Shown: positions 1,281 to 63,998 of the stretch, one piece after another
How positions within the stretch are numbered: position 1 is the first letter of the stretch
How the letters are laid out: each line of letters begins with the position of its first letter
Origin: Cyanophora paradoxa CCMP329
Taxonomy: Eukaryota > Plantae > Glaucophyta
Assembly: GCA_004431415.1 (NCBI GenBank)
Contig: QPMI01000435.1
Coordinates: 62,001 to 126,000, forward strand
Reading direction: 5' to 3'
DNA: 64,000 bases
The notes under the pieces: model-generated
The model's input: the letters and a program-made list of their open reading frames with translations, nothing else
Databases searched by the model: none
Told to the model about the DNA's origin: nothing
Program-made: the position numbers and the translations under genes

Positions 1281-1282
1281 AA

Positions 1283-6844: not shown

Positions 6845-6858
6845 CTCTTTTTATATTT

Positions 6859-6878: not shown

Positions 6879-6884
6879 GGTTTG

Positions 6885-8264: not shown

Positions 8265-8282
8265 TCTTCTAATTAACCCTGT

Positions 8283-26984: not shown

Positions 26985-27023
26985 CGGTTTATTTTTATTT
27001 TTCATAGATCATGCATAAGAAAG

Positions 27024-27584: not shown

Positions 27585-27590
27585 TGGGCC
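27585..27590. repeat. Right target-site duplication TGGGCC
   Basis: Matches 4673-4678. Confidence 0.95.
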
Positions 27591-29439: not shown

Positions 29440-32400
29440 CTAGCCCCTGTATTTCAGGATGTCGTGCCCCGAGGGGTCGACATGAAGGAAGTGATATGTA
29501 GCTGACAGGCGCAGTGATGAGCTGAGTAGTTGGCGGGCGTATCTGGAGGGGCAGAGCAGATGTGGGAGACGGGCCGGGCCTGTGGGGGTGATCGCGCCAT
29601 GGTGGATGCGGCGGCAGCCGCACGTTGCGCACATGTCTGGGAGGTATTGGAGTATGCTGCCGGGCTTTCGAGGTTTGCGCGGCTTCGGGGAAGGCGTCGG
29701 CAGTGGCGTCGGCGGCAGCGGCGGCGGCCGGGGCAGCGGGGGCAGCTCTTCCAGTCGGGCTGGCTGTCGGCGTCGGAGTTTTTTCCGGGGTTCCGAGGTT
29801 GTCTGGCCCGCGGGGGCGCGCATGCTAGGCGGCCGCACCGTAGCTTCTGCCATCGGTTTCCATTCGCCTGGGGCAAAGAATTTAAAGATGGAGCCCTCAG
29901 GGAGCCCTGGAATGGGGTCCGGTGGAGAGGCTGAGGCGTCACGCTTGCCGCGTTTCTGTCCTGGAGGCTTCCGAGGGGCCGGGGCGTGTTTGCGTTTGCT
30001 GCTCAGCGGCTCTGATGGTGTTATCTCTGGGCGACGCTTGGCGCTGGGGGCCGGGGCTGCATCGTCATCCTCCACCGTACGTTTGGAGCCAACGGGTGGG
30101 GGCTTACTGGTGGGCGGTGGCGGGTGCTGCGGGGCCCCGTGCTCGTCTCTGAAGCGTTTAGCTGATGTCGGGGGTGCTGCGGGCGTGGCCGCAGGCCGTT
30201 TCACTACGCGGGCGGGGGGCTGCGGGGGGTATAGAAGGGGTAGTTCCAAGTCGTTCGTCGAGGACGTGGGCTGGGAGGGGCGAGGATTGCGGACTAGGTG
30301 GAATCCGACTCCCGCTGCGCTGTCGATGCAGAGACCTGTAGCGAGGTGGCGGAGGCACAGTCGGGCGGAGGCAAAGCTTGCCCCGCAGGTGTCGCAGCGA
30401 GGGCGTCGCGCTTCGAGTTCGCGGAGGCGGGCGCTACGTCGGGGGGGCTGGCTGTCCTGATGCTGAGCTGGGTGCTGACCGGGTTCCTCTTCCAGCTTCT
30501 TCCAGGTGAACGCCGCCAGCTCGGCCGCCAGGGCAGGAGCTGCCCCGCCGAGGTACTCCGTGATCGTGACTTGTTGGCGTTCGAGCGAGGGGCACCGGGT
30601 AGTCGGGGTAAGAGGAATTGGAGCCGGGGCTGGAGTAGGGACCTGAGCCATCATCGAGGCCTTGGTCCGCTTGGTGCGTTTTTTTCCCGGCGTGATGCCG
30701 TGTTCCTGTTCCCAGGCTATGACTGCGTCGCAGCGGGTTTTCCAGATGCTCCGTGCATGCTCGTCCGCTAGTTGCACCAAGCCGTTCACTGCTTGCTTCG
30801 AGGTCGTGGCTAGAGCTCGAACTCCGAATGCTCGGAGTAGGACGTGAATTCCTTGCGGGGCGACAAGCTGGAAGAGAGCTCGAAATTCGAATTGGTGAAG
30901 GAGGTCAGCTGCTTCGAGAATAGCTAGTTTTTGGCCCAGTGGGCAATCCGGAGCGAATTCGAGCGGAGGGCTGGACATGCCGGGGTCTAGTAGGAAGGGG
31001 AACAGCGCGTCCCAGGAGCTGCGAAGTCCCGTCGGCTTGTGTTTCATTACATGTTTAAGGACGTGCTCGCGGGCGGCTAGGCGGAAGACGTTGACGGCAG
31101 TAGCGGCAGCAGGGCATACCCAGATGTGATCGAAGTCTTCCTCTGCGAGGCGGCAGCGGGGGCAAATTGGTCCCTCGGGGCAGATTGCTGCATAGATGTC
31201 CGGGCGCGTGCGAGCACGGACTCGCAGCGTGGCCAAAGATGCAGTCAGCAGTTTTGAGCGCGTCGCGCGAAGCTGAACCCCGGCTTGGGTCTTGCGGCGT
31301 CCATCTTTGCGGTGTGCGGACATGAGGGAGAGAGCGGCGTCGAGTTGGCCGCCAGTGAAGCGCAGGAGTCTACCAGCTTCGAGTTGACAGCTCCACTGAA
31401 TGAAGTCCACGAGCTGGGCTTCCTCGTCCATGTGTTTGCGCGGGTCTCCGTTCACGCGGTACGCCAAGAGGTGGCCGGCGTATCTCTCTGTGCCGGTCGG
31501 CAGCTCCGCAGAGCCAGACTTAAGCTTGGTGCCATAGCGGATAAGCGGGGTAGTAGACCCGCATCCTGCGGGAAGGTATAGGAGGGCAGGGCAGGGCCCA
31601 TCATTGCAGCTTTTCGCGAGGCGATCGGCCTGGTCGTTGTAGCAGTCGTACGCTGGATTGGGTACCAGTTCCACTCCCGGCGCCCGGCGGGCTCGTGCAC
31701 GGTTTTTCTTGGTCGGGTCAAGGGCAGAGGCCGGTGGGGGCGGTTTTGAGTTCTCTTCGGCGAGGGTAGCAACCTCAGCGGCACGGAGCGATGTCGGGCG
31801 GGTAAGGTTAGAGAGAATTTCGGCGCGAGGCAGATGCAGCCTCCGTTCTCTTTGTAGTTTTCCTACAACCTGGGCGAAGGCAGCTTCGTCTGATTTTGGC
31901 GGGGGGTCTGCTGCCGGGTCTGGTAATGTGATGAGCGTTTGCGAGGGAGGGCGGGAGTGAGCCGCGAGGGAGTCATCTTCGCTGTCGCTCGCCTGCGATT
32001 TGCCCTCAGGTGTGAAGCGGGTCTCGCCGTCGTCACCGATTTCAGAGTCAGGTGGCGTCGGCAGCGTGCCACCGCGGTGCGAGGTTCGCCGGCGCCGACT
32101 GCCGAGCGTTGGAACAAAGGCTGTTTCTGGAGTCGCAAACGCGAGCTGATCCGGGGGAAAGGGTTCGGGGCCTATTTCAGTGGTGCCGAGGTAAAGGGCA
32201 AGTACAATGAAATGGGTGTAGGTCCGTAGTCGTTCCGGGAAGTCCCGAATGAGTGTGCTGAGGCGCTGCGTCGACGGGTCTCCAGAGAGGACGTAGGCTG
32301 TCATGAGAAGAAGTATCCCGCAGGAGGAGCGGTCGATCTGAATGGGTCCGTCGCAGGCATCTGTCGAGAAGGATGTCCATAGAGGCGGGGCGAAGGGTTC

Positions 32401-33380
32401 GTCATCCCGTCGAAGCCAGATTCGGACAAGGTCAAGGCCTAGGGCAGTCCGGTCGGGTCGGCTCCGGTTCCCGCCGTCGTAGATTCGGATCGAGCGTTGT
32501 CTGGGGGCGATGAGAAGGAGGACCCAGTGGTCGGCTGGGTCGCCTTCCCGGTGCGGGAGGCGGGACGGGACCAGAGCGGGGAAGAAAACCATGCGATACG
32601 ACCGTAGTGGTCGTGGTGGCAGATAGTGCAGTGTTTGTGCTGGGTTAAGAGTATGGGGTTGGGCGCCGACACCAGCTGTGGAGATTGCAGTGGGGAGGAA
32701 GCAGACGTCGCCCCCGCGGCACGCCGGTCGGGCTGCCAGGACGTCGAGGAAGGCATCGACCACCCGATCCGGGACTCCACGGGGAAGAGCGCTAGCGATA
32801 GTCCTATAGCTAGTTCGCCCGCCGCTCGGTGCAGGGGGTAGGTCTGTGTATAGGCAGGCAAGGTCTGCAACGTAGAGCGCCGGGGCAGGCGAGCGGGATG
32901 GTCGGCTCTCCGGCGTAGTGTGAGCTCGCGGGTATCCAATGACGGCGTGTTCCGCTGCGTGGTCACCTCGGTTGAGGGCTGGGCCCCAACTGATGCGGAT
33001 TTGGGGAAGCAGGGCTTTCTCGGCCTGCGAGAGAGCTCGAGGGAGGGGCGGCACACGGGGTGGTAGCTGAGGGCTCGTCGCCAATGTTTGCACAGATGAC
33101 ACCGGTGGCAGCGTGGGAGGAGGCATTGAGTCCGCTGCGGGCTCTGGTGAGGACGTGTCGGCGAGCTTGGGTGCCGATGCAGGGCTAGGTGCGGGTGGCG
33201 ACGGGAGCTCCGGTTGTAACGTCGTCACAGTTGGCGGGTCCACGGCAGAGTGGTGGTCATGAGTGGGCCCGGACCAGTCAGCGGGAAAGGAGGGCTTCGT
33301 TGGCTTGTAGCCTTGTCCAGTGAGGCTGAGATCTGAGAGGTAGAGAGCAGCGGCGTACCGGAGCCGGATTGCCGGGAGAA
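29440..33380 (-). CDS. Retrotransposon polyprotein C-terminal part: Ulp1/C48-like protease, last RNase H motif, CCHC zinc finger, C2H2-like finger, Pro/Lys-rich tail
   Basis: DHWVLLLI...IYDG...QIDRSSCGIL; YNDQADRLAK; CPRCRLAEEDFDHIWVC; IWKTRC; CDTC...LRH. Confidence 0.8.
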
Positions 33381-34875
33381 TTGTGCGCGATAATTTGCCG
33401 GGGCAGTCCCAGTCATGCGTGAGATGTAGCCCGATGCAATGTAGTCCGCGGCCGCCAATACTAACAGGGCGTCTTCACCGTGTTCTGCGCCGGGCCAGCT
33501 CGGCGAGTTGAGGGTGCTAGCATCGCAGAACCAGCGAGGGCATTGCGGGGCTGGGCCCCCGGCTTGCTCCTGCCATGCATCTGCCCAGGCTTGAAGCTCG
33601 GGGAGGACATCGGAGCAGGGCATGTGGGAGCCGTCAATAACCCTTATAACTCGGGTGCGTGGAGAGATAAGCGCCAGGCGCCAGTGGCGAAGGAGTGCTC
33701 GACCATCAGGCCCAGGGATGGGCGGGAGGGGGAGCAGGAGGTAGTCAACGTCGTTCGGGCGGAGGGTCGCTTTGTTTGAGCAAATGAACTCTGGAGGGCA
33801 GTCGGGGTCCAGGAGGGCCCGTCTGGCTGCACGGGGAGAGACGAAAATGCAGCTGGGGAGGCCCGGCGTCCGTGCCCGTTCCTGCGCAGCTCGGCGGGCG
33901 ACAAGGCGGAGGAACGCAATTACGTGCTGCTCGTGAAGGGGCATTTCTTGTAAGAGGAGCGCAGATGCGGCTTCATGGTCGGAGAGCGTGAGGGGGTTAC
34001 GCATAGATGCCGCCTGCACTTGCTGGCGTAGAGTTGGCGGTAGCGGCGCGGCGCGGAAATTTGGGTATGCGGCTGAGACTCCCACGGTGGGCGGTGACGG
34101 ATGGTATGCACGGATTGCGTCTGCTTCTGTGAATTTGCCATGCGAAGGCCGTTCGGGCAGGATTGGGCTAGGAGTGTTGGGCAGAACTGACGGGTGGCAT
34201 AAAGTGCAGAGGGGGGCTGGGCCCGCTCGCCAATCCTGAAGTACAAAATCAAGGGAAGTGCACGGGCGGTCCGGGTCGCAGCGGTGATACGCTGCAGTGG
34301 GGTCGTTGGGGGACAGGGGCAGGTCCTCGTCCCAGTGCCAAGCGGGGTGCTCAGCCGGGAATGAGCCATTTTCAGCCATCTGCCATCGAGACGGCGAGGC
34401 GAGCCAGGTAGTCTGGTCGCGCCGGGCCCCAGTCGAGGACGGAGGGCCAGTGAGGGGGTAATCCCGGCGTGCATTCGCGCGGACTGCGAGTGCATCCCAG
34501 TACTCCGTGCGTGACGGGCCCGTTGTTGGGAGAGACACATCGACTTCGGGCCAGAATATTGGGTTAATGGGGGAAGTGCAGTGGAGACTGATACGAGTGC
34601 GATACCGAATCGGAAGGGCGGCAAGCCAGGGTGCGTAGCGGCGTAGGAAGTCAGCTGGAGCTGTAATCACGAGAGACTTTTCAGGCAGCACTCGTGTGTG
34701 GGCCCTCGGGATGCGGATAGCAGTTTCCCAGATTATGCATTGCTCGGCAGGGTGTGCTGCCAGATCGGGGGCAGCTGCAGCAAGGTCAAGTAGGAGGTGG
34801 TGCGGCGTTCCAAATTGCGCAAGTTCTATGATTTCAGGGTTCGCCAAGTATTGTTCGTATTCGCCAAGCGTTTGG
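33380..34875 (-). CDS. Retrotransposon polyprotein middle part with a degenerate Ulp1-like domain
   Basis: HVIAFLRLV...YLLLPL...RHWRLALISPRTRVIRVIDG with no Gln/Cys motif (HGEDALLV). Both flanking frameshifts are repaired by adding one base. Confidence 0.65.
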
Positions 34876-37800
34876 GGGCAATATAAACGTGGGCACGCCC
34901 CTCGTCATCTGGGGGCCCATCATGGAGGTAGGCAATGGGAATATTTAGTCCTCCATAGACACTGCGATATTCCCGGGCTGCAGCCTCCGATGGAGAGGGC
35001 TGGCTGCGTGGAGGCGGGGCGGGGCCAGGGCGCGCGACATAGGGGCGGGTGGCGTCGAAAGGCATACGTGGCGGGGCAGCTGCAGCCCTTGAGGGCTGGC
35101 GGGTTAGTACCGGGTGGGTTAGTCGGGTCTCGAGCTCTGTTATAGGGATGGTTTTCGGCTCGTGGGCTGGGGTCCAGGTTAGAGTCGGGAGGGGGGCGTA
35201 GCCAGCGCGTTCGCGGGCTGCAACAATTGCACGTATTGCAAGAATCGTGTCGCAGTATGGGCTGCGGAGAATTTTCCGAAGGAGAAGAGGGCATCCCGTG
35301 AGGCAAAAGCGCAGCAGAATCGAGATTGTGCCTTTGCTGTCTAGGGTGAGGGTGCCTCCCTCCTTGCCGAGGTACGTGAACGCGAGCATGACAGCCTCGA
35401 GCTCGCCGAGGCCGATGTTATATTGGACTCCACTGACACGAGCTGAGAAAGTAACTGTGGAGAGCAGCTGGGGGTTACGGGCTGCAGGGATGACAACTCC
35501 AAACGTCGTTCTGACTGTGGATTTCCCCGCGTGTCTAGTGCTCCCGTCTGTCCAGATTGAGGTTGCGAGGGCATCGGATGCTGGCGCGTGTGTAGCCTCG
35601 ATCACCCGAGCTAGTGCCGCCGGCGGCTTCGTTGTGTTCCGGTGGGCCGATGGAATAAGACATGGATTTAGGTCTTCACGTCGCGCGGAGGGGGGGGGCT
35701 TTGCTTCAGCCACGTCGAGCTGCACTGCTTCGTCCTGGAATTCTTCCCACCAGGGGGCCAGCTCGAGCCAGATGGAGCGGGCGGCCCCCTCGGGTACTTC
35801 GTAGTAAATCGAGCGGGGCTGTGCGTGTACCTCGGCGCCCTCTAGATCTGAATCCGAGTCGTGCACCGGCCGCGGGGGCAGGGATCGGATTCGGCGTGGG
35901 CGGGGGCCGGAGGCTAAGCGGAAGTCTTGGCGGTTCGTCGGAAGCCCGACAAAGGCTAGCTGTTTGTTTAGCCTTGCGAGCCGTTTCTGTGCCGCAGTCG
36001 AGAGTCTTTGGGTCAACGTCGGGTTTGCAGGTGGGAGAGCTTCAGAGGCGGGCTTGTTTCGTTTGTTGAGCGCCCGTGGGGGGACGAACGGCCCGTCGGC
36101 TGCACGACGAGAGCGCTTGGAGGGATGCCCCGGCGGTCCTGCATCAGCGATGCGGGCCACTCGTACATGGGTGGCCCATTCGTGCCATTCGCACACATCA
36201 GTAGCCAGGCCGAGGTGCTTGTGCAGGCCAGCGCTGCCGCAGTATGATGGCGCTGGACAGGGGACAAAGCAGGCCTTTTCGTCATCGGTCCCTGCGATAA
36301 TTTCATTGCGTTCGCGGAGCTCAGAGTCGTCGAGCCGCCAGTGGCGCAGGTGAACCATGTAGACCTTTTCAGTCTCCGCTGTTGCCTCTGGATCAAGGTT
36401 CGCAGCCTCCGGGTCTGCTATCAGGGGCGTGGATACGACCTCGGCTAGGTAGCCCGCTGAAGTCCAGACCAGTGTGCCGGGGGTGAGCTTGGCGATGAGG
36501 GGGCTAGCGCGGACTGCTTGGCGAATATCAAGGGGACGGGAGAGTAGGGGCATGCAAAATTCTGCGCGGATCGGGCGGGGCCAGGTGGGGCCCTCCGCTT
36601 CGTCAAAATGTGCGCGTTCAGACAGTTCTTCGCGTAGCCAATCCCACCATTCCGGCTGTTTGCGTTTTGTGTAGGGGACGCGGCAAAGCTGCCAGAGCTC
36701 TGACCAGGTTGGGATGCAGACTTCGCCATGAATCTGAACTGTGATGTGGGCCATCGTGAAGAGGCCACATTCCATGAGAAAGACGCCAGCCTTGGCTAGA
36801 AGGGCGGGAGAAAGTTGGGAAGCCAGGATGAACCGACGGTCAAGTTTAGCTTCTGTCCCTGAGAGGCCTAGCACCCATCCGTTCGCTGCAAGCGTCGTCC
36901 AGTTGGCGAAGGCATGATCAGACGCGGCTAGAGCCCGTGTAATGGACAGGCACAAATGTGTGTCCTCTTGCCGGGAAGTTGGTGTGAAATTCGAGTATTC
37001 GTAGGGGAGCAGGCAGAGCCCGTGTCGGGCTTGGGTATCCAGTATGCGTTGGCGGTGGAGCTGTCCAATGAGGGAGTCCGGGAGAAAATAAGCTGTCTCG
37101 AGCCGGAGCCGCTCGTCGAGTGTCTGAGACTGGAGCAGGAGCGTGGAGACATGGCGCAGCTGGTAAAGAAGGTAGAGTGCTGGTGTACTGGTTGACTTAG
37201 CGTGGCCTGCGGCGTGTCTAAACACTTCGGACCAAACTCGCTCCAGCTGTGCACAGCGGGCTGCACTGAGCGTCATGATTCGCATCGGGTAGGCCAGTTT
37301 AGGATAGATAACGCGGTGTAAAACAGTGCGAAATTCGTCAACGGAGAGATATTTTGGGCCGAGGAGGTGCATTGCGGTGCGTGCATGTGAGAGGAGGAGG
37401 CGAAATTGGTGCCCCCAGTCAAGCGATGCTGTGAAAAATACTCCAAGGATTCGGAAGGCATCATTTGGTTGATGGATGGTGCCGATGGGCTCGGCTTGGG
37501 GTCCCAAGCCCACTTTGATCGGTGCAAGTGTAATCGGGCGCGATGGCCGCCAGTCCGGTCGCCAGAAAGCTACCTCGCTCTTCTTTGCATTCAGGCGGAT
37601 GTTATGAATGTGTAGGAATTCTGAGAGCCACTGAAAGAAGCGCTGGAGGGTGTGTGGGGAGTCTGCAAACATCGTTGTATCGTCCGCGTAGGCCAGGATC
37701 GATAGGAACGAGCGGGGCCCAGCTGGAACTTTATAGGTCTCCCCGGGTCGCGCGGCGCCTGTGGTGCCTGGGACAAAATCACGGAGCTTCCCGGAGGAAG

Positions 37801-40800
37801 TACCTGGGAGGGGGCCCATGCGGTACCCAATATTGGCTGCCCGTGCTTCTTCATCGATTGCTGTGAGCACCGTGTCATAGAAGATGCGCCAGTGGAGGGG
37901 GGCTTCAATCCCTCCCTGCGGCAGGCCGCAGCGAACTTGGAACCATTCTGTACGGCCATGGGGCGTAAGGATGGCGGCCGTGCGGTGTCGAGCTGCGTAG
38001 GCGTGGAGTTGGATGTATGCGCGGCCAGCCGGATGCTCGTGCATGCGTAGCCGGCGGAAGCTGGCTTCCATGCTTTCCCAGGAGACGCTGTCGTACGCGC
38101 TAGCTATGTCACCAAGGCCAATGTATATTGGTTTGCGGTGGTCATGGGCGTCCTCAAGGGCTGCGCGGACCGCGTACAGGACTGGGTCGGTAGATTCGTG
38201 TCGACGGAAGCCGTAGTTGGGTCCTCGCAGGATCTGGTGGTCTTCCAGACGGGAATCGAGCCTGTCGGTGAGGATGCCCGTGACAAGCTTCCAGAGAACT
38301 TCCTGTAGCGTGATTGGGCGGAGGGAGCCTAGATCAGTAGCGTTGTCGCGTTTGGGGATGGTAAAGACCTGTCCGCGGAGAAGATGGTCGCATATATGGC
38401 CTTCAAGCGTGGCTTTGACGATCGCCTTTATGACCTCGCGGGAAGTGGTCCAGAAGTCGGTACTGGCCCATGCATCAACTTCGGCGTGGCTGTGCTTAAG
38501 GGTGAGAAGCTGACGATCAGCTTTTGAGAGGTGCGGGGGGAAGAATATCATTTTAAGCATGCCATTAGTGAGACCCGACGGGCCGCCGGCTCCGTCTGAT
38601 GTGGCTGCAAGGCGGGCTGAGAGTTCGCGATCTTCTGGCATGTCCGTCATGCCGTCGAATGCAGCAAGCTGAACGTGTGGGAGGGGTGCATATTGGCGGA
38701 TCCAGTGTTCCGCGCGTTCGGGGTGCAAAGCCAGGCGAGCACGGATGCGCTCTGGTGTGACGGCGGCATCACGTGGGTACCAGAATCTCTCATCGAAAAA
38801 TTCTTTATATTCGGTCAGCACCGCTTGCGGCGCCGTTATGACGTGCACGATGCCTTCCACCAGTTTTGTGAGGTACGGCTTGACAGTGCTTCTGAATTTG
38901 TCGAACAGAATCTGGATCGCTTGCCCCATCGAGGACGAGCGGGAGAGCATGTGACGTCGGGCATCGATGTCGCGGGATAGTTTGTCGGTCTGGAAGCCCC
39001 GGCGGTGTGCATCAAGAGCTGCCATATTGCGGTTTGTCCAGGAGGTTAAAGCTGCGAAGTAGCGCGACCAGCATTCTTCAGGAGTCGCACGGTCGGAGGC
39101 GCCTGGGAAAATTGGGGCAGCTTCTCGGGGGACGGGATAGTAATGGAATTCCGTCTCTGGGCGCTGGGCTACTTCAAAATTATGGAATTCAACCGTCTGT
39201 TCGAGCTGTGTAAGGTAGTGTAGTGGGGAGGATCTGGAGCCGTCGGCACTGTCAGGAGCTAGTGCCGGTGGGGGGCCAGACGTGTCGGCGTGGCGTGCCC
39301 AAGCTGAGAGGCATCCCTGGACCTGAAGCAGGATGCCGGAGTCCTGGTCCTTCGCTCCTGGGGTGAATATGCTGGGGGTCCGGTCGCGGCGCTGGCGGTA
39401 TTGGAGGAGCTGGGCCTCACTGAGGTCGGGCGACTCGGCCGCGTATTTAACCGCTTCCACGAGGGCGTGCATGAGCGTGCGGACTGCCCGCTTGACCCGC
39501 CTAGGGTAATTTGGATGCGTCCGCTGTTGTTCCGTGGGGCGGAGGATGAGGTTGACTTGGTGCGAGGATCGGGCCAGCCAGGTCTGGACGTGCATCTTTG
39601 CCCTGACGCGCGTCTCTGCCGGTTGCGCCAGGTAGGTGAAAGCTGGGGGAAGGGGCTGGGTTTGAGGGCGTACGCTGGGGCGGACCGCGTTCCCTTCGTT
39701 ATCTAGCGAGGGGAGAAGGCCCTCGATGTTGAACGAGGTGATCACGGGGAAGTGGTCAGAGCGGATTGCAGTCAGGACTCGGGCAGTGTAGAGTGTGCGA
39801 GTAGCCTGCATGCGCGCTGCCAGAGCTTCGGATGCAAGAATCCCGTCCAGTCGCGCAGCCGTGTGGAGGCGCTGCGGGGCTGGGGTGTCTGGGCCTTCGT
39901 TCTGGGGCCGAGCAGCTTTAACCCAGGTTATATCGCCTGGAGTACCGAGGTCGATCAGCCGCCAGTCGTGGAGCAGCGTTGTCCAGAAATCCCGCTCAGG
40001 GGCTGATTTGCGGGCTCGGGCCGTGGAGATGCGGTCGCGGCGAGGGTCATGGACCGCATTGAAGTCACCCATTAGCAACAGTTCGGTGTGTTTGAAATCC
40101 TTGTGTCGCCAGTCATTCAGGACAGTTGTCGTTAGATATTCCATGACGTCGTCTAGTTCGCTCTGGGGAAGTGAGCGATGAGGCATGTACACGTTCAAGA
40201 CAAGGAGCCGCTCGGCTGGAGATTTCTGATAGAGAACGCCAATTAGACGGCCGGGGACCGCATACGTTTTGACAATGTCGTGTTTGAATCGGTTGTGCAC
40301 CCAAAGGGCCACGCCTTTGCCTCGTCCGGCCTCGTCGGCGTTGGTGGGGCCTGAAACATAGAGAGTGCCCTCGGGGCGGATGCGGTGTATGGCGCGTACA
40401 AGTCCTTGCATTCGTGCGCCTGGCAGGCTGAGTTCTTGGAAAGCTACGAAGTCCGCGGCCCAGGTCCCCACGGTTTCGTTGAGGGCCGCTAGGAGGCGGT
40501 CTGCCGGGTCACGTAAGGTCTCGAGCAGTCCCTGGACATTCCAAGTGACGCAGCGAATCTCAGAGTTGAGCCGTGGGCAGGCCGCAGAGGGGCTGCTCGA
40601 GGTCCGGCCCCGGAGGACGAAGCGGCGCTCATCGGTCGAGCGAGGGTATATGGCGGTGTTCTGATAGAAATTAGGCGGGTACAGGTCCGCAAGCGAGAGG
40701 GGGGCTTGAGGCGGCGGCTGGTCGCTCGCAGGGGCGGGGTCGGTGCTGTCGTCGTTTATAATTAGGTCTCCGGATTCCGGGGGGTCCGCTTCGAGGTCCC

Positions 40801-52429: not shown

Positions 52430-54208
52430 AACACACTCACTTTTTTTTTGCATCCGCAAGCACACAAACATCTACGTTTCTGAAGAACTACTTCTTTAAG
52501 TTCAAGGCTTTGTCCGCAGACACGGTGTTGGCGTCCTTGCGCCTGCAGCTGCGCTTCCCCGTCGGGGGCTCTTGATCTACCAGAGTTGTCTCTAACTGTC
52601 TTCTCTCCCGAGCTGGGAGCTGAGCTGCAGCTGCAGGCGGTGTGCCAGACGATATCGATATCGGTGACGAAGCTACGCTGTCGATGTCAATGGGGAGAGG
52701 AGGAGCAGGAGGGAGCGCTGCTTCTTCTTGTGCACTGCTTCCCTGTGGCACAGCTGCAGCAGGTCGATTGACTTCTGCAGGGTTCGAAGTCTTCTTGGCC
52801 CGCTGCTTCTTTTTGGCAGCCGGGCTCTTTGGATCTGGAACACATGCATCAGAACGCAATTCTATTTTAATTTGAAGATAGATAACATATGGGTACTGAC
52901 CATTAGACTGGCAGGGACAATTGATAGCACCAGATCTTTTGCCCGACGTGGTTGTGCACCCGAAGCATATACCTTCCTTGCAAATCATGCCAATCTTGCC
53001 GCACTCAAATGTAGAGCTTGCAACCGAGCTCTTGCACTGCGCAAGCTCCTCTGGCCGCAGCTCTCGGATGTAGCCACACGAGACGCAGTCCACCTTCTCA
53101 GGCCCTGCAGGAACACATGTGTTACGCAATTGTTGCGCATGCGTTGCACTCAGCGTTGGGCATGCGTACTATACGCACCGCAGGTATCCTGATAGTACTT
53201 GGATAGGAGGCCGTCGATCTTGCTAGGATCTTCGATGAAACGTTCAATCCCGCTCCGCACCGCGGGATCAACTGCTGTTGGATACAGGAAGCGAGCCTGC
53301 TCGAGGCCGAAATGAATTATCACAAACCACAAATTATATTAATAGGAGATGACAGGCACGACGAACCCCGTCCTTTTCCAGCATGTTCCGTACTTTGTCC
53401 TTGCCAGTATTCTGAAGCATGTGGATGAGGACGGCAAGGCGTCGATCGGCGGCTGTAACGGCCTGCGGGCCGTGCTCCTTGTAGACCAGCTCGGGTTTGG
53501 CACCGTACGTGAATGCAACCTTTGCAGAATCAATGAGCACATAGGGTATATAAATAAATAAATTATGAAAGCACGTTGGTCGGCTTGTCAAAGACAACTG
53601 TCGAGATGTCGACGCCATCACACTCTGTGAATTTCTGCAGGTCGACAAAGATGTGCTGGGAGTCGCCAGTATAATTGAGCCATTCCGATATATCTGATTC
53701 CAGTCAAGGACCAAGAACGCATGCAAAACGCATTGGAAAACATCTCTAATACCGGATTTGGAGCATGTTGTCATAGTCAGCTGTGCTCCCCACACCACTC
53801 CGTCTGCTCGTGTCTTCTTCTTGACGTTCTTCGGTGTGTAGTTGGGGGCGTAAATCGCCGCGATGGCCACAGCTCCAAGAACTCTTGACAGTTCCAGCAC
53901 GCGGAGCTCGTCTGTGATTTTCTCTGCACCAATAATATTCAGATGAGGATAATTCCGTTCCTTCTAGTAAGCGGGCGGATACCAATGACAAAATCGAGGA
54001 CCTCTCCGTCATCCTTCGACTCATACCCAGTCACATTGACACGGTACGACGTCTCAGGAGCCGACGTCAAAGCGAATCGAAGCATGGGTGCTCCGGAATG
54101 AGTCTTGTCCGCCTTCCCGAACTTCTCGCTGGCTTCGTTCTGCATCTTGATGATGGCCTGCTTTGCGGCGAGCGTGCAGATGATAATCGTTTTCTGTTTC
54201 GCAGCCAT
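52430..54208 (-). CDS. Multi-exon accessory gene of the DNA transposon with a CW-type-like zinc finger
   Basis: Successive minus-strand ORF pieces separated by short AT-richer GT-AG segments; VDCVSCGYIREL...FECGKIGMIC...CFGC. Exon boundaries approximate. Confidence 0.5.
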
Positions 54209-54499
54209 TTTTGATCCCCATGCAGACCAGGTGCAGACGCATACATAGCGCACCTGCTGCTGGCCCTTACCCGCCTCATTCTCGAACGCTACGTTGCGGA
54301 GGTCCCGCAGCGTCGCGTTCTACGCGAGCGTGACGCAAGCGCAACGCAAGGTCAACGCAAGCGTTACGCAAGGTGTTACGCAATTCCAACGCTTGCGTTG
54401 GCCCTCATGTGTTACATACTTGCAACGCATGCGTTGCGCATGCGTTGGAATACAGAATTATGCGTTGAGACGCACCGGTTCGAAAAAGTCGACGTACTT

Positions 54500-55806
54500 A
54501 TGTGGCTTGTTATCGATTTTCTTGCGCTCGATCCAGCCGGCAACAAGAGTTTGAAGCTTGCCACCTCCCAGCAAGAAATCTGGGGCTTCGATTAACATGC
54601 AATCGCTTGATCTTCGCTTGCATGCCCTGCACCTGGATACGACGGTTCTTCAGGCTGCAGAGGCATCGAGCATGCGTCCCGATGGTTTGAGAACCGGATA
54701 CTGATCGTGTTCACAATTGTGCCCATGAATTGCGGCCCGTAGACCAGGGACTCGTTGTCTACTGTCGAAACTGCAATTGTTTAATTTCGATTGATCATGA
54801 GGAGCTCAAGAGAGGGAACTGCAGCTCACTAAAAATTCGACTTTACGCACCCTGGATAGCTGGAGAGAGCTTCATCGAGAGTGGATCGTATCGTTCGATC
54901 CCATTTGCATCCAGGAAACCCCAGGCGACGCTCTTTACTTGGGCACCGCTGCCGAAGCTGTCTGATTTCGACTGAGTGCCTCCCCTCTGGGACATTGGGG
55001 CAGGGGGGACCGTAGCTCCCCGTGCAGGAGCCTGTGATAGAGGGGGCCCGCGTCACTGGAAGCGTGCGTAGCACACACGTGCACGTTCAGCACCTCCGTG
55101 AAGGGGTTGGCGTTGGAGGGACTCGAGCTCCCTCCACCGCCACCTAGGCTGGACGCCAGCTCCCGCAGCTGTTCCATCGTCATCGGGGCGCCCGGGTCCC
55201 TCGACCTGTTGATCTGACCGAGGATCGCCCCCATCCCGTAGTTCGCGCCAGTTCCACCTGACGCGCGCACACATCAGATCTAGAGCAGCGCTTTCAGAAG
55301 TCGCTCGGTGCAACTTGCCTGACCCGGCGGGAGTGCGCAAGTTCTTGAGCATGTCCAGGAGTTCGGGCGTAATTCCAGATGCCCCAGCAGCCGCGGCCGC
55401 GGCCGCAGCTGGAGGTGGCGGCGAGGCAGCTGTCTGCGACGCGCTCTCCGGCTCTGCGTTCGCGATTCAGACTGCGTTCGCGATTGATCGAAAAGCATCG
55501 AAAACGCGTCGCACTTCCGCAGCTGACGATGGCGTAGTAGGTTTTGCTCGGGCTCTCATTTGTGCCGGTCTTCCACTTGAAATCAGGCATGAGCTTCAGC
55601 GAGAATGTCTCTCTCGAATTCGCGCGCTCGTCGACTTCTTCGAAGATCGCTGTCTGCATCCACAGCTGGCTCTGGAGCACCGCTTCTACGAGGTCGGGTA
55701 GCTGCTCCTTCAGTTTCGACGAGCGGATACTCCTGATCTCTTCGCCAACCTTTACGCGCACGAGACCATCGCTAACGCTCTCGTTCTCGCCCGCGTTCGA
55801 CGTCAT
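54500..55806 (-). CDS. Second multi-exon accessory gene of the DNA transposon (unknown function)
   Basis: ATG at 55806; ORF pieces 55294-55806, 55053-55352 and 54935-55270 with coding-like composition; 3' end uncertain. Confidence 0.4.
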
Positions 55807-56053
55807 CTCGCGCTGCGCGATGCTCCACGTGCGCGTGTACCCTCCCCCGCATATATGACAGCCTGGCGCACTGCTCGAACGAGGTGCGCAGCGACCGCCC
55901 AGCGTTTGCGTTTAGTGCTTGCGCATCTAGATGGCCAAATAAACGCGCTCAGAACGCGCCTCGTCTACAGCCATAGCCTGTTTCTGGACCTATATACATC
56001 TGGAACATACAGTCTGAGGGGTTTCCGGCCTGTAGGACCCCTGTTACGCGTAC

Positions 56054-59000
56054 GCTTAAGTTTATAATCAGGTCGTCCTGCTCAGCGGGCTTAGACTCGT
56101 TGATGCGGACGGACCACGTGTATATGGGCCTGATAAGGTGCGCTGCAGGACGCCCTGTGTCCTGGCTTCTTCTCCGGGTTGCCCACACGAGCACAGGTGG
56201 CCAAGGCCGAGCCATGTGGTTGCAGATGCCAGCCGCCAGCTGAAGGAGATCGAGCTCAGACTCGAGTGTATGCACGGGATCCTCGGTGGCATAGGCATCG
56301 TCTGTGGCTCTCACATTCTCGTGCGCTGCGCTTCTGTTGATAGTCGATGAGGTGCGCCTCGTCTCAGTTAGCTCTGGGGCTAGGCTCAGCGTGGCTCGCA
56401 GGCTACGGGTCAAGTTCGGCTCAGCGGGGCCTGCGGGGGCTCTGCAAGGGCTCCTGGCTCGCCCGGCCTCAGCCACGGGCGAGGTGAGCGCCGCCCTGGG
56501 CAGTTCCGGGTTCATAATCAGGGACAAGGTCGGCGTCGCTGTGATTAGCTCCGGGGCCGGGCTGAGCTGCGCGCAGAGGTCGAGGGCCTCGGCCGGCGGG
56601 ATGGGGGCGGCGGGGGCGGCACGAGGGCCCCGCGCGGGTTCTTCTTCGGCCAGGCTCGAGTTGGGCGTCGCCGCGGGCGGCCCCGAGGCCGGGCTGAGCC
56701 GCGCGCAGGGGTCGAGGGCCTCGGCCGGCGGGACAGGGGCGGCGGGGGCGGGACGAGGGCCCCGGGCGGGCTCTTCCTTGGCCAAGCTCGAGGTGGGTGC
56801 CGCCGCGGGCGGCCCGGAGGCCGGGCTGAGCCGCGCGCAGGGGTTGAGGGACTCGGCTGGCGGGACGGGGGCGGCGGGGGCGGCATGAGGGCCCCGGGCG
56901 GGTTCTTCCTCGGCCAGGCTCGAGGTGGGTGCCGCCGCGGGTGGCCCCGAGGCCGGGCTGAGCCGCGCGCAGGGGTCGAGGGGCTCGGCTGGCGGGACAG
57001 GGGCGGCGGGGGCGGGACGAGGGCCCCAGGCGGGCTCTTCCTCGGCCAAGCTCGAGGTGGGTGCCGCCGCGGGCGGCCCGGAGGCCGGGCTGAGCCGCGC
57101 GCAGGGGTCGAGGGGCTCCGCTGGCGGGACAGGGGCGGCGGGGGCGGCATGAGGGCCCCGGGCGGGTTCTTCCTCGGCCAGGCTCGAGGTGGGCGTCGCC
57201 ACGGGCGGCCCCGAGGCCGGGCTGAGCTGCGCGCAGAGGTCGAGGGCCTCGGCCGGCGGGATGGGGGCGGCGGGGGCGGCACGAGGGCCCCGCGCGGGTT
57301 CTTCTTCGGCCAGGCTCGAGTTGGGCGTCGCCGCGGGCGGCCCCGAGGCCGGGCTGAGCCGCGCGCAGGGGTCGAGGGCCTCGGCCGGCGGGACAGGGGC
57401 GGCGGGGCGGGACGAGGGCCCGGGCGGGCTCTTCCTTGGCCAAGCTCGAGGTGGGTGCCGCCGCGGGCGGCCCGGAGGCCGGGCTGAGCCGCGCGCAGGG
57501 GTTGAGGGACTCGGCTGGCGGGACGGGGGCGGCGGGGGCGGCATGAGGGCCCCGGGCGGGTTCTTCCTCGGCCAGGCTCGAGGTGGGTGCCGCCGCGGGT
57601 GGCCCCGAGGCCGGGCTGAGCCGCTCAACGTTGCGGGGGCGCGGAGTGGCCCCAAGTTCCGCTTCAGCGCCAAGTCGGCGGTATAGCTCGCCCCAGTTAG
57701 ACCCCGTCACCGTTGCACGCTGGCCTAGTTCCCGGTTGCCCGCCTTTCGTCGCTTCCCGCGAGCTTGTGAGATGTAATTCAATTCAATCAAGGAGAGGTT
57801 CAGGAGGTCGGGCGGGGCAGCTATGCCTACGGAAGCGAGCGGGGCGCCAGTAGGCTCTATATCTGCCGAGGCTGGGGAGACATTCAGGAGGTCGAGCGGG
57901 GCGTCTGTGCCTGCGAAAGCGGGCGGGGCTCCAGGAGGCTCTGCCGCGGGAGTTGGCTGCGTGCAGGCTGCATCATCGGGGCTGCGAGGGACCCGTACCG
58001 TGATCGGGTTCAGTCGTCGTCGTTGCGCAAGGAGACCCGCTTCGGCTCCCGGAGCAGCGGAACATCTTGCTTCTGGGCCCGCCGAGACTGTGATCGCAAG
58101 CGGAGTAAGCACGGGGGAGAAGTCAGAGGCAGTGCCGGGAGGGCGAGCCTTGGGGCAGTCGCGCTCGGGGTGGAACCAGGTTGCGACGTCGGTGGGGTCC
58201 GTCCGGCGGCAGAGGAAGCAGATCGAGCCCATAGCCGCCTGGAAGGAGAGGCGGACGAAACCGAGCGTGTCCGCCTCGAGGGTGCCCCGGGCGCCTGGCT
58301 CCCAGGTGTGGGGCGGCTTGGCCTGGCGCTTTGATGAGCTTGGGGGGGTCGCGGCCAGCTTGCGCTCCTTGCGCTTCTGGGCCGAAGACCCCGCCGCGGG
58401 GGTCAGAGGCGGGGAGGCGCTAGCCGGCTTGGTCGGCGACGAAATGGCCATGCTCTCGAGGTCCATCGGCGTGGCATCGTCAGCGCGGCGCTCCTCGTCG
58501 GTGAGCTGCTGGCCGTAGAAGACGTAGCCCAGCATTTCCGTGTTATTCTGCGACGTCATGGTCATTGGCTGCTGCGGGCGGTGGTGGGGGCGTGGCGCCG
58601 GCGGGCAGGGCGGACCCAGGGGAAGAGAGAGCGGATGATAGCCAGGCATCGCTCGCCCGCGCGGGGGCCCACTGTCGGGGTGAAGAAGACACTGACGCCT
58701 CCCGGGAGGCGGTGGAGCAGTCCCGTTACGACTCCCACTTGGAGCGCGCAGCGCCAGGGCGCCAGTGCGTCGAGCTGGTTCGGGCGGGAGAGGAAGACGC
58801 CCTGGACGTATATCTGAGTAGAGGGAAGCAGAGTTAGTGTTCAGCAGGGTGTGGGTTGGGTCCGGGCGAACCGAGAATCCGACGGCAGCAAAGCGAAGGC
58901 AGAGTTCTTCGTATCGGGATTCCAGATACTTGAAGGCGTCCTCTGGGGTGAGCTGGGCAAGAGCGGAGCAGCTGAAGATGGGGCCGGGTGCGGCGGTCAT

Positions 59001-62000
59001 AGCCACCAGCTCGACCGTGTTGTCCCTGAGTACGGCGAGGTTTGCGAGCGGCAGTACGGCGATGGGGAAGCCGAGGACGGAGCGGGGAGACAGGAGTCGG
59101 CAGCCCGACTCTGTCAGGGAGCTGGTGCCGCGAACCGCCGCGGCTGCCGCCGGGCTGATTGCCGCGAGGTAGGTCGGGCCGAGAGCCGAGTGGACTCGGA
59201 GGGCGAAGCCTTCGAACTCGTCAAGGACCTCCGTGACTGAGTTGCGCTGCATCGCGTTCCTGATGACGCGGAGGAACTCTCCTGCTGCCACGGGGGGGGG
59301 CAGCAGTTCCTGGGCTCCGTTCCAGGCCGCAATCTGAAGGCAAAAGTGAGTATGATCTTCCTGAGCGCGTGTGAGGGGAGGAAGTTGATTGTGCACGAAC
59401 CGCGATGATGTTTTCGCCCGGCCAGTAGATAATGTCGAGGTGCGGGAGCTGGCGCCACAGTCCCCGAACGGGCTTGTTGGGCTGGTCCGCTTTTCCGACC
59501 AGACGTTCTTTGAGGCGGGCCACCACCTCCATGTCGAGTCGAAGGGGGAGGTTCTGGAGCTCCGGGATTTCTTCTTTCTAAGAAGCGCCTTGCGTTCATC
59601 AGGTGATGCAGTGAGGCGCCGGGTATTGGGCGAGAGACTGACCTGAACCGCGAAGGTGTAGCAGCTGGGGTGACGGCTCATCTCCGTCTTCGGCTCGAGC
59701 GAAGCGAGGGGGAAAACGCGGGCCGCTTGCTCCGGGATCTTGAACGGTGGCGTCGGGACTGCCTCGACATCGGGGTTCTCCGGATCGGGGCCCGGGACCT
59801 TGATCGGGCCGTCTCCAAGATCGATGCCTTCCAGGTACTCGATCATCGATGCTGTGGTGTCGTGAGCGGCTTCGCTCATAGCTTTCCCGAACTGCGTGGG
59901 GACATTCTTCTTCCCCTGTAGCTGCCGCTGGTCTAGCGTGAAGCGATTGACCACTGGATGTATGGATATGGGCAGGAAAAGGATGCAGTAACGGCGAACT
60001 TTTGTGCTTTTCGCGAGCGAGGCCGATCGGACGACTTGCAATGCCTCCGAGGGCAGCTGGCGGAAGTGGCCGACCTGGATTCCCAGGCTGAAGCCACGGA
60101 TTGACTGTGCGTCTGTCAGCTCCTTAGTCGCTGCTGCCGCGCCCGTGCCGATGGACGGCTCCTGGACGCCAGTGAGAATCTTTTTCTCGAGTTCCTTGAT
60201 TGCTGCTGGAACTTTGTACTGGACAGAGCTCGCGTGGGCCAGTTGGCCCAGGGAGACCGCTGTAGCTGAGGCCAAGGCGGCCATTGTTTTATGGAGTTGG
60301 CGTTGCGATCGCGAGGTGGCGATCGGCGTACCCTGACCCTGACTCTTACTACCCCCTCCCAGCTCCGCATGATAGGCGGTACTATTGTTGTTCATCAAGT
60401 AGGGCCACTGCTGGTGCCCTAACAGGGGGCGTTCCGGCCTGATATCTACGGCCGCAGATGGCGCAGTCACTATATGCAGTAGGGCGGGCGGCGGAGTCGA
60501 GGCCTGCTCGCAGTCTGCAGCGGCCGGGGCCGCTGGCCTTAAAGGAGAGGGGAGCGCCGCGTCGGCGGCTGCCGCTGTGCGGGGGGGTACGACACCGCGA
60601 GGCCGGGGGGTACCCGAGAGCGATGCGGGGCGCGGGGCGGGTGCCTCAGGCGGCGGGGTCACGTCTGCAGCGGCCGGGGTCGCTGGCCTTGAAGGGGAGG
60701 GGGACGTCGCGGCGGCCGCTGCCGCGGCGGGGGGTATGACACCGCGAGAGAGGGCCCCGTGGCGGGCTCCCGGTAGGAGTGCCGCCGGGGGGGTACGCGG
60801 GGCGGGGGCGGCGAGTGGAGGGAGGGCTTCGGGCGCCGCTGACGGCGATAGGGCGCGTCCCCGTTCGCCGATCGACGCCGAGTCCTGCGGCGGGGATACA
60901 GCTTCCGGGGCGGGCGAGGGCTGGGGGGTACCCGAGAGCGCGACGGGGCTCGGAGCAGAAGCCTCGGGCGGCGGAGTCGCGTCTGCAGCGGCCGGGGTCG
61001 CTGGCCTTGAAGGGGAGGGGGACGTCGCGGCGGCCGCTGCCGCGGCGGGGGGTATGACACCGCGAGAGGGGGGCCCGTGGCGGGCTCCCGGCAGGAGTGC
61101 CGCCGGGGGGGCACGCGGGGCGGGGGCGGCGAGCGGAGGGAGGGCGTCGTGCGCCGCTGACGGCGATAGGGCGCGTCCCCGTTCGCCGATCGACGCCGAG
61201 TCCTGCTGTGGGGGTACAGCTTCCGGGGCGGGCGAGGGCTGGGGGGTACCCGAGAGCGCAGCGGGGCTCGGAGCAGAAGCCTCGGGCGGCGGGGTCACGT
61301 CTGCAGCGGCCGGGGTCGCTGGCCTTGAAGGGGAGGGGGACGTCGCGGCGGCCGCTGCCGCGGCGGGGGGTACGACACCGCAAGAGGGGACGTCGTAGCG
61401 GGCTCCCGGCAGGAGTGCCGCCGGGGGGGTACGCGGGGCGGGGGCGGCGAGCGGAGGGAGGGCGTCGGGCGCCGCTGACGGCGATAGGGCGCGTCCCCGT
61501 TCGCCGATCGACGCAGAGTCCTGCTGTGGGGGTACAGCTTCCGGGGCGGGCGAGGGCTGGGAGGTACCCGAGAGCGCGACGGGGCTCGGAGCAGAAGCTT
61601 CGGGCGGCGGAGTCGCGTCTGCAGCGGCCGGGGCCACTGGCCTAGAAGGAGAGGGGGGCGCCGCGGCGGCCGCCGTCGCGGCGGGGGGTACGACACCGCA
61701 AGAGGGGACGTCGTAGCGGGCTTCCGGCAGGAGTGCCACCGGGGGGGTAGGCAGGGCGGGGGCGGCGAGCGGAGGGAAAACAAGAGCGGCGACGGGCGCC
61801 GTTGGCAGCGCCAGAGCACGTCTCACATCGCCGATCACCGCCGAGTGCTGCGGCGGGCGTGTAGCTTCCGGGGCGAGCGAGGCCGGGGGTACCCGAGAGC
61901 GATGCGGGGCGCGGGGCGGGTGCCTCAGGCGGCGGGGTCACGTCTGCAGCGGCCGGGTCGCTGGCCTTGAAGGGGAGGGGACGTCGCGGCGGCCGCTGCC

Positions 62001-63998
62001 GCGGCGGGGGTGCGACACGCGAGAGGGGCCCCGTGGCGGGCTCCGAGAAGGAGCGCCGCCGGGGGGTACGCAGGGCGGGGCGGCGAGCGGGGGGCGGGCG
62101 TCGGGCGCTGCTGGCGGCGATAGGGCGCGTCTCCGTTCGCCGATCGACGCCGAGTCCTGCTGTGGGAGTACAGCTTCCGGGGCGGGCGAGAGCTGGGGGG
62201 TACCCGAGAGCGCGACGAGGCTCAGAGCAGAAGCCTCGGGCGGCGGAGTCGCGTCTGCAGCGGCCGGGGCCACTGGCCTAGAAGGAGAGGGGGGCGCCGC
62301 GGCGGCCGCCGTCGCGGCGGGGGGTACGACACCGCAAGAGGGGGCGTTGTGGCAGTCTCCCGGCAGGAGTGCCGCCGGGGGGGTACGCGGGGCGGGGGCG
62401 GCGAGCGGAGGGAGGGCGTCGGGCGCCGCTGACGGCGATAGGGCGCGTCCCCGTTCGCCGATCGACGCCGAGTCCTGCGGTGGGGGTACAGCTTCCGGGG
62501 CGGGCGAGGGCTGGGGGGTACCCGAGAGCGCGACGAGGCTCAGAGCAGAAGCCTCGGGCGGCGGAGTCGCGTCTGCAGCGGCCGGGGCCACTGGCCTAGA
62601 AGGAGAGGGGGGCGCCGCGGCGGCCGCCGTCGTGGCGGGGGGTACGACACCGCAAGAGGGGACGTCGTAGCGGGCTCCCGGCAGGAGTGCCACCGGGGGG
62701 GTACGCAGGGCGGGGGCGGCGAGCGGAGGGAAAACAAGAGCGGCGACGGGCGCCGTTGGCAGCGCCAGAGCACGTCTCACATCGCCGATCACCGCCGAGT
62801 GCTGCGGCGGGCGTGTAGCTTCCGGGGCGAGCGAGGGCCGGGGGTACCCGAGAGCGATGCGGGGCGCGGGCGGGTGCCTCAGGCGGCGGGTCACGTCTGC
62901 AGCGGCCGGGGTCGCTGGCCTTGAAGGGGAGGGGGACGTCGCGGCGGCCGCTGCCGCGGCGGGGGGTGCGACACCGCGAGAGGGGGCCCCGTGGCGGGCT
63001 CCGAGAAGGAGCGCCGCCGGGGGGGTACGCAGGGCGGGGGCGGCGAGCGGGGGGCGGGCGTCGGGCGCTGCTGGCGGCGATAGGGCGCGTCTCCGTTCGC
63101 CGATCGACGCCGAGTCCTGCTGTGGGAGTACAGCTTCCGGGGCGGGCGAGAGCTGGGGGGTACCCGAGAGCGCGACGAGGCTCAGAGCAGAAGCCTCGGG
63201 CGGCGGAGTCGCGTCTGCAGCGGCCGGGGCCACTGGCCTAGAAGGAGAGGGGGGCGCCGCGGCGGCCGCCGTCGCGGCGGGGGGTACGACACCGCAAGAG
63301 GGGGCGTTGTGGCAGTCTCCCGGCAGGAGTGCCGCCGGGGGGGCACGCGGGGCGGGGGCGGCGAGCGGAGGGCGGGCGTCGGGCGCCGCTGGCGGCGATA
63401 GGGCGCGTCTCCGTGCGCCGATCGACGCCGAGTCCTGCGGCGGGGATACAGCTTCCGGGGCGGGCGAGGGCTGGGGGGTACCCGAGAGCGCGACGGGGCT
63501 CGGAGCAGAAGCCTCGGGCGGCGGAGTCGCGTCTGCAGCGGCCGGGGCCACTGGCCTAGAGGGAGAGGGGGTCGTCGCGGCGGCCGCCGTCGCGGCGGGG
63601 GGTACGACACTGCAAGAGGGGGCGTCGTGGCAGTCTTCCGGCAGGAGTGCCGCCAGGGGGGTACGCGGGGCGGGGGCGGCGAGCGGAGGGAGGGCGTCGT
63701 GCGCCGCTGACGGCGTCGGGGCACGGCTTGGATCGCTGATCGGCGCCGAGTCCTGCGGCTGGGGTACAGTTTCCGGGGCGAGCAAGGGCCGGGGGGTACC
63801 CGGGAGCGCGGCGGGGCGCGGGGCGAAGGCCTCGGACGGCGGCGTCTGCATGGGGACCGGCATGGAGCAGGGGCTTGCGCCCTCTGTGGCGCTCTGCGCA
63901 AGAAAAGCAGTCCAGGGAAGGGGCGGGGGAGGTGTGACTGGCGAGGGGGGCGGGGACAGGCCAGCGGCGATTGGGACACCGAGCGCGAAGACAAAGCA
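56054..63998 (-). CDS. Retrotransposon polyprotein 5' part (ORFs 55949-57673, 56469-61838 and 61938-63863; open to the window edge) with a CCHC knuckle
   Basis: CFLCRRTDPTDVATWFHPERDC at ~58155-58225; frame changes fall in G/C runs inside repeats; joins in frame to the APE-RT ORF after transposon excision. Confidence 0.65.
56540..57625 (-). repeat. About 8 copies of a 132-bp (44-aa) coding repeat ARLSPASGPPAAAPTSSLAEEEPARGPHAAPAAPVPPAEPLDPC
   Basis: Read from sequence and translation. Confidence 0.88.
58562..60284 (-). CDS. Nested five-exon gene (491 aa if spliced, unknown function) inside the long ORF
   Basis: AAAACAATGG start; GT-AG introns at 59916-59999, 59578-59642, 59361-59400 and 58814-58871 (the last with a CACTAAC branch point); spliced length 1476 nt = 492 codons ending in TGA. 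Confidence 0.65.
60490..63850 (-). repeat. About 10-11 copies of a ~318-bp (106-aa) Pro/Ala-rich coding repeat with a ~960-bp higher-order period
   Basis: Equivalent positions at 60779/61097 and 62369/63329. Confidence 0.88.

Follow-up and report, generated by a model that had tools for sequence, protein, structure and literature searches.

The window analysed here, a stretch of 64,000 nucleotides from the glaucophyte Cyanophora paradoxa CCMP329 (contig QPMI01000435.1, positions 62,001 to 126,000, with coordinates below counted from its first letter), contains on its minus strand a long interspersed nuclear element (LINE) whose reading frame continues upstream, free of stops, through tandem arrays and through genes that have introns. 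Between 63998 and 29443 there are, with an inserted segment left in place, five minus-strand stop-free stretches of 686, 1,822, 4,608, 559, and 1,344 codons (Table 1). Counted without overlap, the coding sequence amounts to 27,032 nt (~9,010 codons) and is still open at the window edge. An earlier note on this DNA had claimed ~27 kb of minus-strand coding sequence with a given order of modules, and both stand. The order is a 318-bp array, a nested gene, a CCHC-like motif, a 132-bp array, a second nested gene, another 132-bp array, hydrophobic helices, the AP-endonuclease (APE), the reverse transcriptase (RT), RNase H with an Ulp1-like block, and a CCHC motif.

RESULTS

The open frame and its interruptions

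The segment 48530-56045 lies between the two copies of a perfect 8-bp duplication (ACGCGTAC on the plus strand, at 48522-48529 and 56046-56053) and ends in imperfect terminal inverted repeats of ~25 bp with the common core ACAGGCCGG. Its GC content is ~0.54 and its strand skew ~0, and none of the nine open reading frames (ORFs) of 126-246 aa within it has a match in Pfam. It is probably a DNA transposon. Excision of the segment with one copy of the duplicate joins ...DDLIINLSVR to VLPTCTSPEG in frame, just as the earlier note had it, and the result is free of stops from 57706 to 34829, over 5,118 codons. Since the transposon split the frame exactly and its removal restores those 5,118 codons, the frame was open at the time the transposon landed.

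The remaining breaks had been described as small, and they are four: 61938-61940, 57706-56472, 34904-34829, and 33474-33228. The first is the sole in-frame stop upstream, a TGA that follows the loss of 1 nt in a C4 run by comparison with neighboring units of the 318-bp array. At the second, the frame changes from 2 to 0 at some point within a 132-bp array, all three minus frames of which are open. The last two lie in the LINE core and are lesions of this copy or assembly errors, because the nearest relative (P0003, see below) is a collinear single ORF. Programmed -1 frameshifting was considered for these two breaks and rejected: No X XXY YYZ site occurs in the required register, and P0003 runs through both places without a break.

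The stop-free frame is not due to chance

In the open frame, each non-repeat segment (GC 0.62-0.69) contains 0 stops, versus 15-30 in each other minus frame and 9-38 in each plus frame. The stops present in all plus frames (2-38 per segment) exclude a shadow ORF of a plus-strand gene. A strict count was restricted to the 1,487 codons that lie in introns, in exons read off their own frame, and in linkers without coding-like codon usage. These codons contain 0 stops, whereas 43.5 are expected from the other frames; after local shuffling, the same codons contain 32.5 stops on average and never fewer than 16 (2,000 shuffles). Chance or GC content cannot account for the stop-free frame. Downstream from the 3′ end of the LINE, at 27000-29442, there are 26-36 stops per frame.

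The tandem arrays have a GC content of 0.78-0.82 and two or three open frames. For this reason, and because the 318-bp units are read in different frames, the fact that the array periods are multiples of 3 adds little evidence. Firm support for the frame begins only at ~60.6 kb, since the 318-bp array is open largely through its composition and its units lack a consistent frame.

The LINE core and its closest relative

The LINE core is, to judge from its sequence, ancestrally one ORF of ~3,700-3,900 codons, broken in this copy by two frame changes. In Pfam, the APE domain lies N-terminal to the RT within one ORF, the arrangement that marks a LINE. The nearest solved structures to the RT are R2 proteins (E 5e-7); among solved structures, it is thus nearer to the R2 type than to L1. 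The motif blocks of RNase H are separated by ~3.5 kb with Ulp1-like sequence; the match to Peptidase_C48 (PF02902, at 32529-32260) is weak (E 0.001, 19.4 bits, under the Pfam cut-off of 20.7 bits). Candidate starts of the LINE ORF are the ATGs at 41200 and 40861.

An exhaustive HMMER search gives one strong relative, P0003, with 3,720 aa uninterrupted, 42% identity, and an E-value of 2.7e-259. The other matches, several of which are further Cyanophora LINE models, are short and have ≤63% identity. P0003 is encoded at 297-11459 of an ENA metagenome contig of 11,942 bp (L001) and aligns collinearly to 40570-35141, 34739-33402, 32775-30670, and 29658-29443. Collinearity extends over 3,700 residues and takes in each of the three core pieces to the very end; the two proteins also share the CCHC motif and the C-terminal ...SATYH.LHVD...RG, and in each case the stop is followed by a purine-rich tract. 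The claim of an APE-type LINE with one very long ORF is thus borne out for the 3′ part. The two differ on the 5′ side: The P0003 ORF begins 5 residues before APE, behind a separate ORF and a 177-nt gap, whereas the frame in the window continues >5,000 codons further upstream. No similarity to the upstream region of the window is found in the first 600 nt of L001. The purine-rich tract after the stop of the relative lies at 11480-11570 of L001 and may be a conserved 3′ untranslated region (3′UTR) feature.

For the restriction-like endonuclease (RLE), inspection of the sequence does not reveal a conserved PD...(D/E)xK after the CCHC motif in the alignment with P0003. The C-terminal 686 aa have no match in the PDB, and no NPGP (2A) motif is present on the 5′ side of the LINE. 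Ribozymes are not found at 29-64 kb with Rfam, even when E-values as high as 1 are admitted. A comparison of the 3′ flank with 40.5-41.7 kb for a target duplication gives only a 10-mer at chance level (29220 / 41341). Word-indexed protein searches give no match for the piece across the APE junction (41500-40400) and one weak match for APE-RT. Among the metagenomes of JGI, a first scan gave no match and a second only RTs at ≤36% identity, which say nothing on the 5′ architecture.

Nested genes, arrays, and helices upstream of the LINE

The first nested gene corresponds to part of P0001, a Cyanophora gene model of 921 aa that is the only database match of the 990-codon upstream piece and maps to the window in seven blocks with 100% identity. 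Its four introns are GT..AG introns of phase 0, with lengths of 65, 67, 58, and 68 nt, and they have branch-like motifs and tails rich in pyrimidines. The coding frames of exons 2 and 4 are 1 and 0, respectively. A codon model derived from the core of the LINE gives these two exons scores of +0.39 and +0.20 in their own frames vs. -0.13 and -0.20 in the read-through frame, so that the spliced reading is the real coding one in this gene. The sum of intron 1, exon 2, and intron 2 is 309 nt and that of intron 3, exon 4, and intron 4 is 324 nt; both are multiples of 3 and both are stop-free in the read-through frame. The AlphaFold2 prediction for residues 1-616 of P0001 has a pLDDT (predicted local distance difference test) of 34.

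The second nested gene follows frame 0 to ~47039 or 46964, with then an intron of 134-209 nt and a last exon (46829-46569) in frame 2. It ends with a TAA (46568-46566) followed by an AT-rich, 3′UTR-like tail, and frame 0 is open across all of it.

Under the codon model, the scores of the coding islands upstream resemble that of the core. An excess of C over G on the sense strand is present in every upstream segment, introns included (0.07-0.38), as in the core (0.21) and in L001 (0.25), while it is ~0 in the inserted transposon and in the flank downstream from the LINE. The load of decay is similarly light in the core and in the upstream part. The upstream sequence is thus joined in frame to the LINE, stop-free far beyond chance, with codon usage and skew like those of the LINE. 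No homolog of any upstream module is found in Pfam, the PDB, the ESM Atlas, or IMG/VR (where only the first exon of the second nested gene served as query).

Arrays A and B, both of 132 bp, are homologous, with ~67% nucleotide identity and only 36-39% amino acid identity in the open frame; they have diverged roughly neutrally with the period kept. Comparison of the protein pieces of the ORF with each other gives only low-complexity matches rich in proline and alanine. The start codons at 60284, 48172, 41200, and 40861 (minus strand) all occur in ATGGCC(A/G)C, i.e., MA(T/A)..; this may be merely the local start context.

Other genomic copies and RNA

Contigs (not reads) of two DNA runs and two RNA runs were placed on 38000-43900 at a likeness of at least 88%; the observations concern the pieces listed, besides which there are 80 further pieces. 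Sixteen DNA runs contain 83-88% of the sampled words of this interval. Among the pieces listed, several contigs are ~89% identical to the core at 38.9-39.9 kb, and 27 of the 28 listed differences at 38954-39296 occur at third codon positions. A collapsed contig with twice the depth is nearly identical (~99%) over 40.1-41.1 kb. The core is a multicopy family, recently active and under purifying selection. The locus itself is a dead copy of this Cyanophora paradoxa LINE: It is inactive because of two frameshifts in the core, one frame change upstream, one stop caused by an indel, and the 7.5-kb transposon insertion.

One contig joins 40768 upward to unrelated AT-rich DNA; in a test for an empty site, the 30 loose letters beside 40768 occur nowhere else in the window. 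A second version of 42.14-42.73 kb is present in the DNA runs, with extra depth and a contig of lower depth that skips 139 nt (42358-42498). At 42798-42805, the contigs of the runs have 42 letters for the 6 of the window, a net gain of 36 nt that stays in frame. The differences at these two places suggest that the hydrophobic region varies between strains or copies.

On this interval, the RNA runs, which belong to two studies, yield a single contig, an antisense transcript (Table 1). It is spliced, with introns of 50-57 nt, and its longest ORF (129-160 codons, G/A/R-rich) is not convincing. It is possibly a non-coding or silencing-related transcript.

Just downstream from the LINE, an inverted repeat of 568 bp with 99.6% identity (4674-5239 / 27024-27591) brackets ~23 kb of DNA with lower GC content. 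Such repeats fit the terminal repeats of an integrated Polinton-like element.

TABLE 1. Features of the window discussed in the text (RT, reverse transcriptase; APE, AP-endonuclease)
Feature	Position	Strand	Description
318-bp (106-codon) tandem array, 10.2 copies	60597-63846	-	GC 0.78; internal frame slips; frame still open at 63998
First nested gene	58179-60284	-	Exons 1-5 of EukProt Cyanophora model tig00020616_g12253.t1 (P0001); exact mapping, splice sites, codon-usage scores
CCHC-like motif CFLCRRTDPTDVATWFHPERDC	58155-58220	-	Sequence motif
132-bp tandem array B, 8.2 copies	56551-57624	-	Open in all three minus frames
Secondary insertion, 7,516 bp	48530-56045	.	Imperfect terminal inverted repeats and 8-bp target duplication
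Second nested gene	46566-48172	-	ATG at 48172; codon-usage frame plot, candidate introns
132-bp (44-codon) tandem array A, 16.8 copies	44046-46257	-	Tandem-repeat period
Spliced antisense RNA	43078-~44085	+	GT..AG introns 43528-43584, 43794-43843, third ~43371-43425; runs X17, X19
Region with five hydrophobic helices (42352-41273)	41273-42408	-	LINE-like codon usage, in frame with LINE ORF
LINE core, ~11.7 kb	29443-41200	-	Acidic N terminus, APE, RT, RNase H split by Ulp1-like block, CCHC, conserved C terminus
APE domain	39773-40570	-	PF03372, E 4.3e-11, aa 2695-2960 of the 4,601-aa ORF
RT domain	37550-38380	-	PF00078, E 2.3e-20, same frame as APE
RNase H motifs, split	31612-35557	-	DGS 35557, E 35407, H 35179 (first block 35557-35156); ...NDQADRLAK 31641-31612
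CCHC motif CPRCRLAEEDFDHIWVC	31114-31164	-	Conserved in P0003
G-rich tract	29362-29430	-	Directly after stop codon TAG (29440-29442)
Stop-free piece	63998-61941	-	Frame 2, 686 codons; window edge reached while open
Stop-free piece	61937-56472	-	Frame 2, 1,822 codons
Stop-free piece	57706-34829	-	Frame 0, 5,118 codons after excision of the insertion
Stop-free piece	34904-33228	-	Frame 2, 559 codons
Stop-free piece	33474-29443	-	Frame 1, 1,344 codons
Frame break 0 to 2 (-1 shift)	34829-34904	-	C5A3 run in interval; P0003 uninterrupted here
Frame break 2 to 1 (-1 shift)	33228-33474	-	P0003 uninterrupted here

DISCUSSION

A LINE variant extended at its 5′ end and translated from unspliced RNA is our best explanation of the locus, although we hold it tentatively and at somewhat less than an even chance. 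In a LINE with cis-preference, an RNA has to be translated as far as the RT if it is to be copied. Self-copying would then be restricted to RNAs that have no stop from the first AUG in use to the RT, and such a selection would purge stops from linkers, introns, and off-frame exons alike. The extension would consist of upstream modules accreted 5′ of the LINE ORF, with the unspliced RNA serving as both template and message for the RT. Splicing of the four introns of the first nested gene would keep the downstream frame; splicing of the intron in the second nested gene would shift the frame so that it ends at 46566, with a product from the upstream part only. A stop-free frame that ignores the boundaries of introns and of exon frames is what would be expected of an unspliced RNA translated to the RT, and no host-gene model predicts it.

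There are several observations that weigh against such an extension. The upstream genes retain spliceosomal introns, with two exons in frames other than the read-through one, and sense introns should vanish if spliced RNA were ever copied. Reading of the 318-bp units shifts between frames. Because the window does not reach the 5′ end, no target-site duplication of the whole is demonstrable. Among the pieces listed, the contigs of other copies end near 41.07-41.15 kb in both independent DNA runs, and 41152-42136 is covered by one contig only per DNA run. Further upstream on the interval, the second version at 42.14-42.73 kb is the sole exception, and it counts in favor of the extension. At 41.2-43.9 kb, the window differs from the run contigs at nine sites, spread 3/3/3 over the codon positions, which shows, on a small sample, no amino acid constraint there. 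For 57.6-60.6 kb, protein databases give a single match, and this is the gene model of the locus itself. With the P0003 ORF starting at APE, the extension is not ancestral. Finally, there is no sense RNA contig on 38.0-43.9 kb in the two RNA runs, which is weak evidence as contigs cannot show absence.

Many of the same facts can be read as the result of a chance landing: An ordinary LINE copy of 11-12 kb, lacking only its extreme 5′ end, would have inserted in sense and by chance in frame (1 in 6) into a pre-existing giant open frame specific to this locus and of other origin, perhaps that of another retroelement or translated unit, which the LINE neither created nor maintained. We consider this somewhat unlikely. 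The similarity of the other copies stops at ~41.07-41.15 kb within the acidic N-terminal region and not at a recognizable feature, and the relative P0003 has ~3,700 codons. The single depth of 41.15-42.1 kb, P0001 as the only database match to the upstream gene, and nested genes with their own ATGs, introns, a stop, and a 3′UTR-like tail speak for it as well. However, a landing offers no mechanism for a frame that is stop-free across introns and linkers. Moreover, a host ORF is not continued below the 3′ end of the LINE, where each frame has the stops counted above, and the codon usage and skew upstream match those of the LINE and not those of the flank.

The earlier note had gone further than a 5′-extended variant and taken the 27+ kb for one mobile unit of a giant LINE lineage, with a polyprotein possibly processed by its own protease, which here would be the Ulp1-like domain. 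The most far-reaching form of such a reading would be an APE-type LINE 27 kb or more in length (34.5 kb if the nested transposon is counted) that makes a polyprotein of ~9,000 codons from unspliced RNA and has spliceable genes inside its ORF. Splicing vs. intron retention would then choose between products of the upstream part alone and read-through into the RT, a switch like that of Gag/Gag-Pol but made of introns. We regard this full form as unlikely. The single mobile unit is not supported: The contigs of other copies end near 41.1 kb, the P0003 ORF starts at APE, and the upstream introns are kept. 5′ transduction or 5′-end replacement is known for L1, and 5′ truncation is normal for LINEs; because of such truncation and replacement, the ending of the other copies and the short ORF of the relative lower the probability of the giant element only in part.

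Two minor rivals have, even taken jointly, only a small probability. In the first, which we consider very improbable, unrelated host genes on the same strand and satellite arrays lie beside a LINE, and the long frame is a by-product of high GC content and of repeats rich in proline and alanine. The arrays are indeed open in two or three frames anyway, the units of the 318-bp array are in different frames, none of the upstream modules has a Pfam, PDB, Atlas, or viral match, and the first nested protein has the low pLDDT given above; but the non-repeat segments have 0 stops here vs. 2-38 in the other five frames, and shuffled sequence never falls below 16. The second, a giant host gene with a domesticated LINE polyprotein at its C terminus, kept by host selection and broken only by assembly errors, would agree with an upstream locus that looks single-copy, with breaks in or near base runs, and with the in-frame change from 6 to 42 letters at 42798-42805, but is the least credible of all, since in the window sequence the frame is interrupted by the 7.5-kb transposon, the core belongs to an active family whose other copies match it at ~89-99% identity, introns would not stay free of stops under selection on a spliced mRNA, and sense RNA is missing among the RNA contigs on 38.0-43.9 kb. 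To readings other than those named here we leave a modest probability.

Comparison with known elements

The Dualen/RandI LINEs of Chlamydomonas are described (PMC4640811, PMC9977147) as having one ORF of great length that encodes APE, RT, and RNase H and, as their defining trait, the RLE as a second endonuclease. The window LINE has a long single ORF too, with APE, RT, and split RNase H motifs, and among solved structures its RT is nearest to R2 proteins. The RLE of Dualen was not found by inspection of the sequence, and for this reason we do not file the window LINE under Dualen. Dualen, known from Kojima and Fujiwara in 2005, reportedly also carries a cysteine protease.

In dinoflagellates, SymbioLINEs carry a DNA methyltransferase in the LINE ORF (cited in PMC12344493), and L1 is subject to 5′ transduction or 5′-end replacement; transduction on the 3′ side is described in PMC6431247. 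In SymbioLINEs and in 5′ transduction or replacement in L1, as here, foreign coding sequence is joined in sense and carried in the LINE RNA. The differences are that the added sequence here is at least 16 kb, that its introns are retained, and that the reading through the introns is stop-free.

Giant retroelements of tens of kilobases with added ORFs (transmembrane, structural) are represented by the Terminons, which are Penelope-like, and by Burro, a Gypsy element (PMC6431247). The same review of giant eukaryotic transposons does not describe a giant non-LTR (long terminal repeat) element, i.e., a LINE. Terminons and Burro differ from the window in being Penelope-like or LTR elements, and the added ORFs of Terminons are several and separate. 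In retroviruses, the unspliced genomic RNA acts as template and also as the message from which the RT is made, and recoding or splicing sets the ratio of Gag and Gag-Pol products. The likeness to the window is one of analogy only: There are no LTRs here, and the splicing switch is proposed from the nucleotide sequence.

Significance

If the whole frame retrotransposes as a unit, ~5-15 kb would not be the limit of LINE length, and this one would be by far the largest LINE, with by far the largest ORF of its class. LINEs could then carry genes with introns and yet stay translatable, with a selfish element keeping the introns stop-free, and retroelements would have a new way to capture and express host-like genes. 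If the LINE is a mere passenger, >5,000 codons are still open across introns, off-frame exons, and intergenic-like linkers, a translation signature for which, to our knowledge, there is no described explanation.

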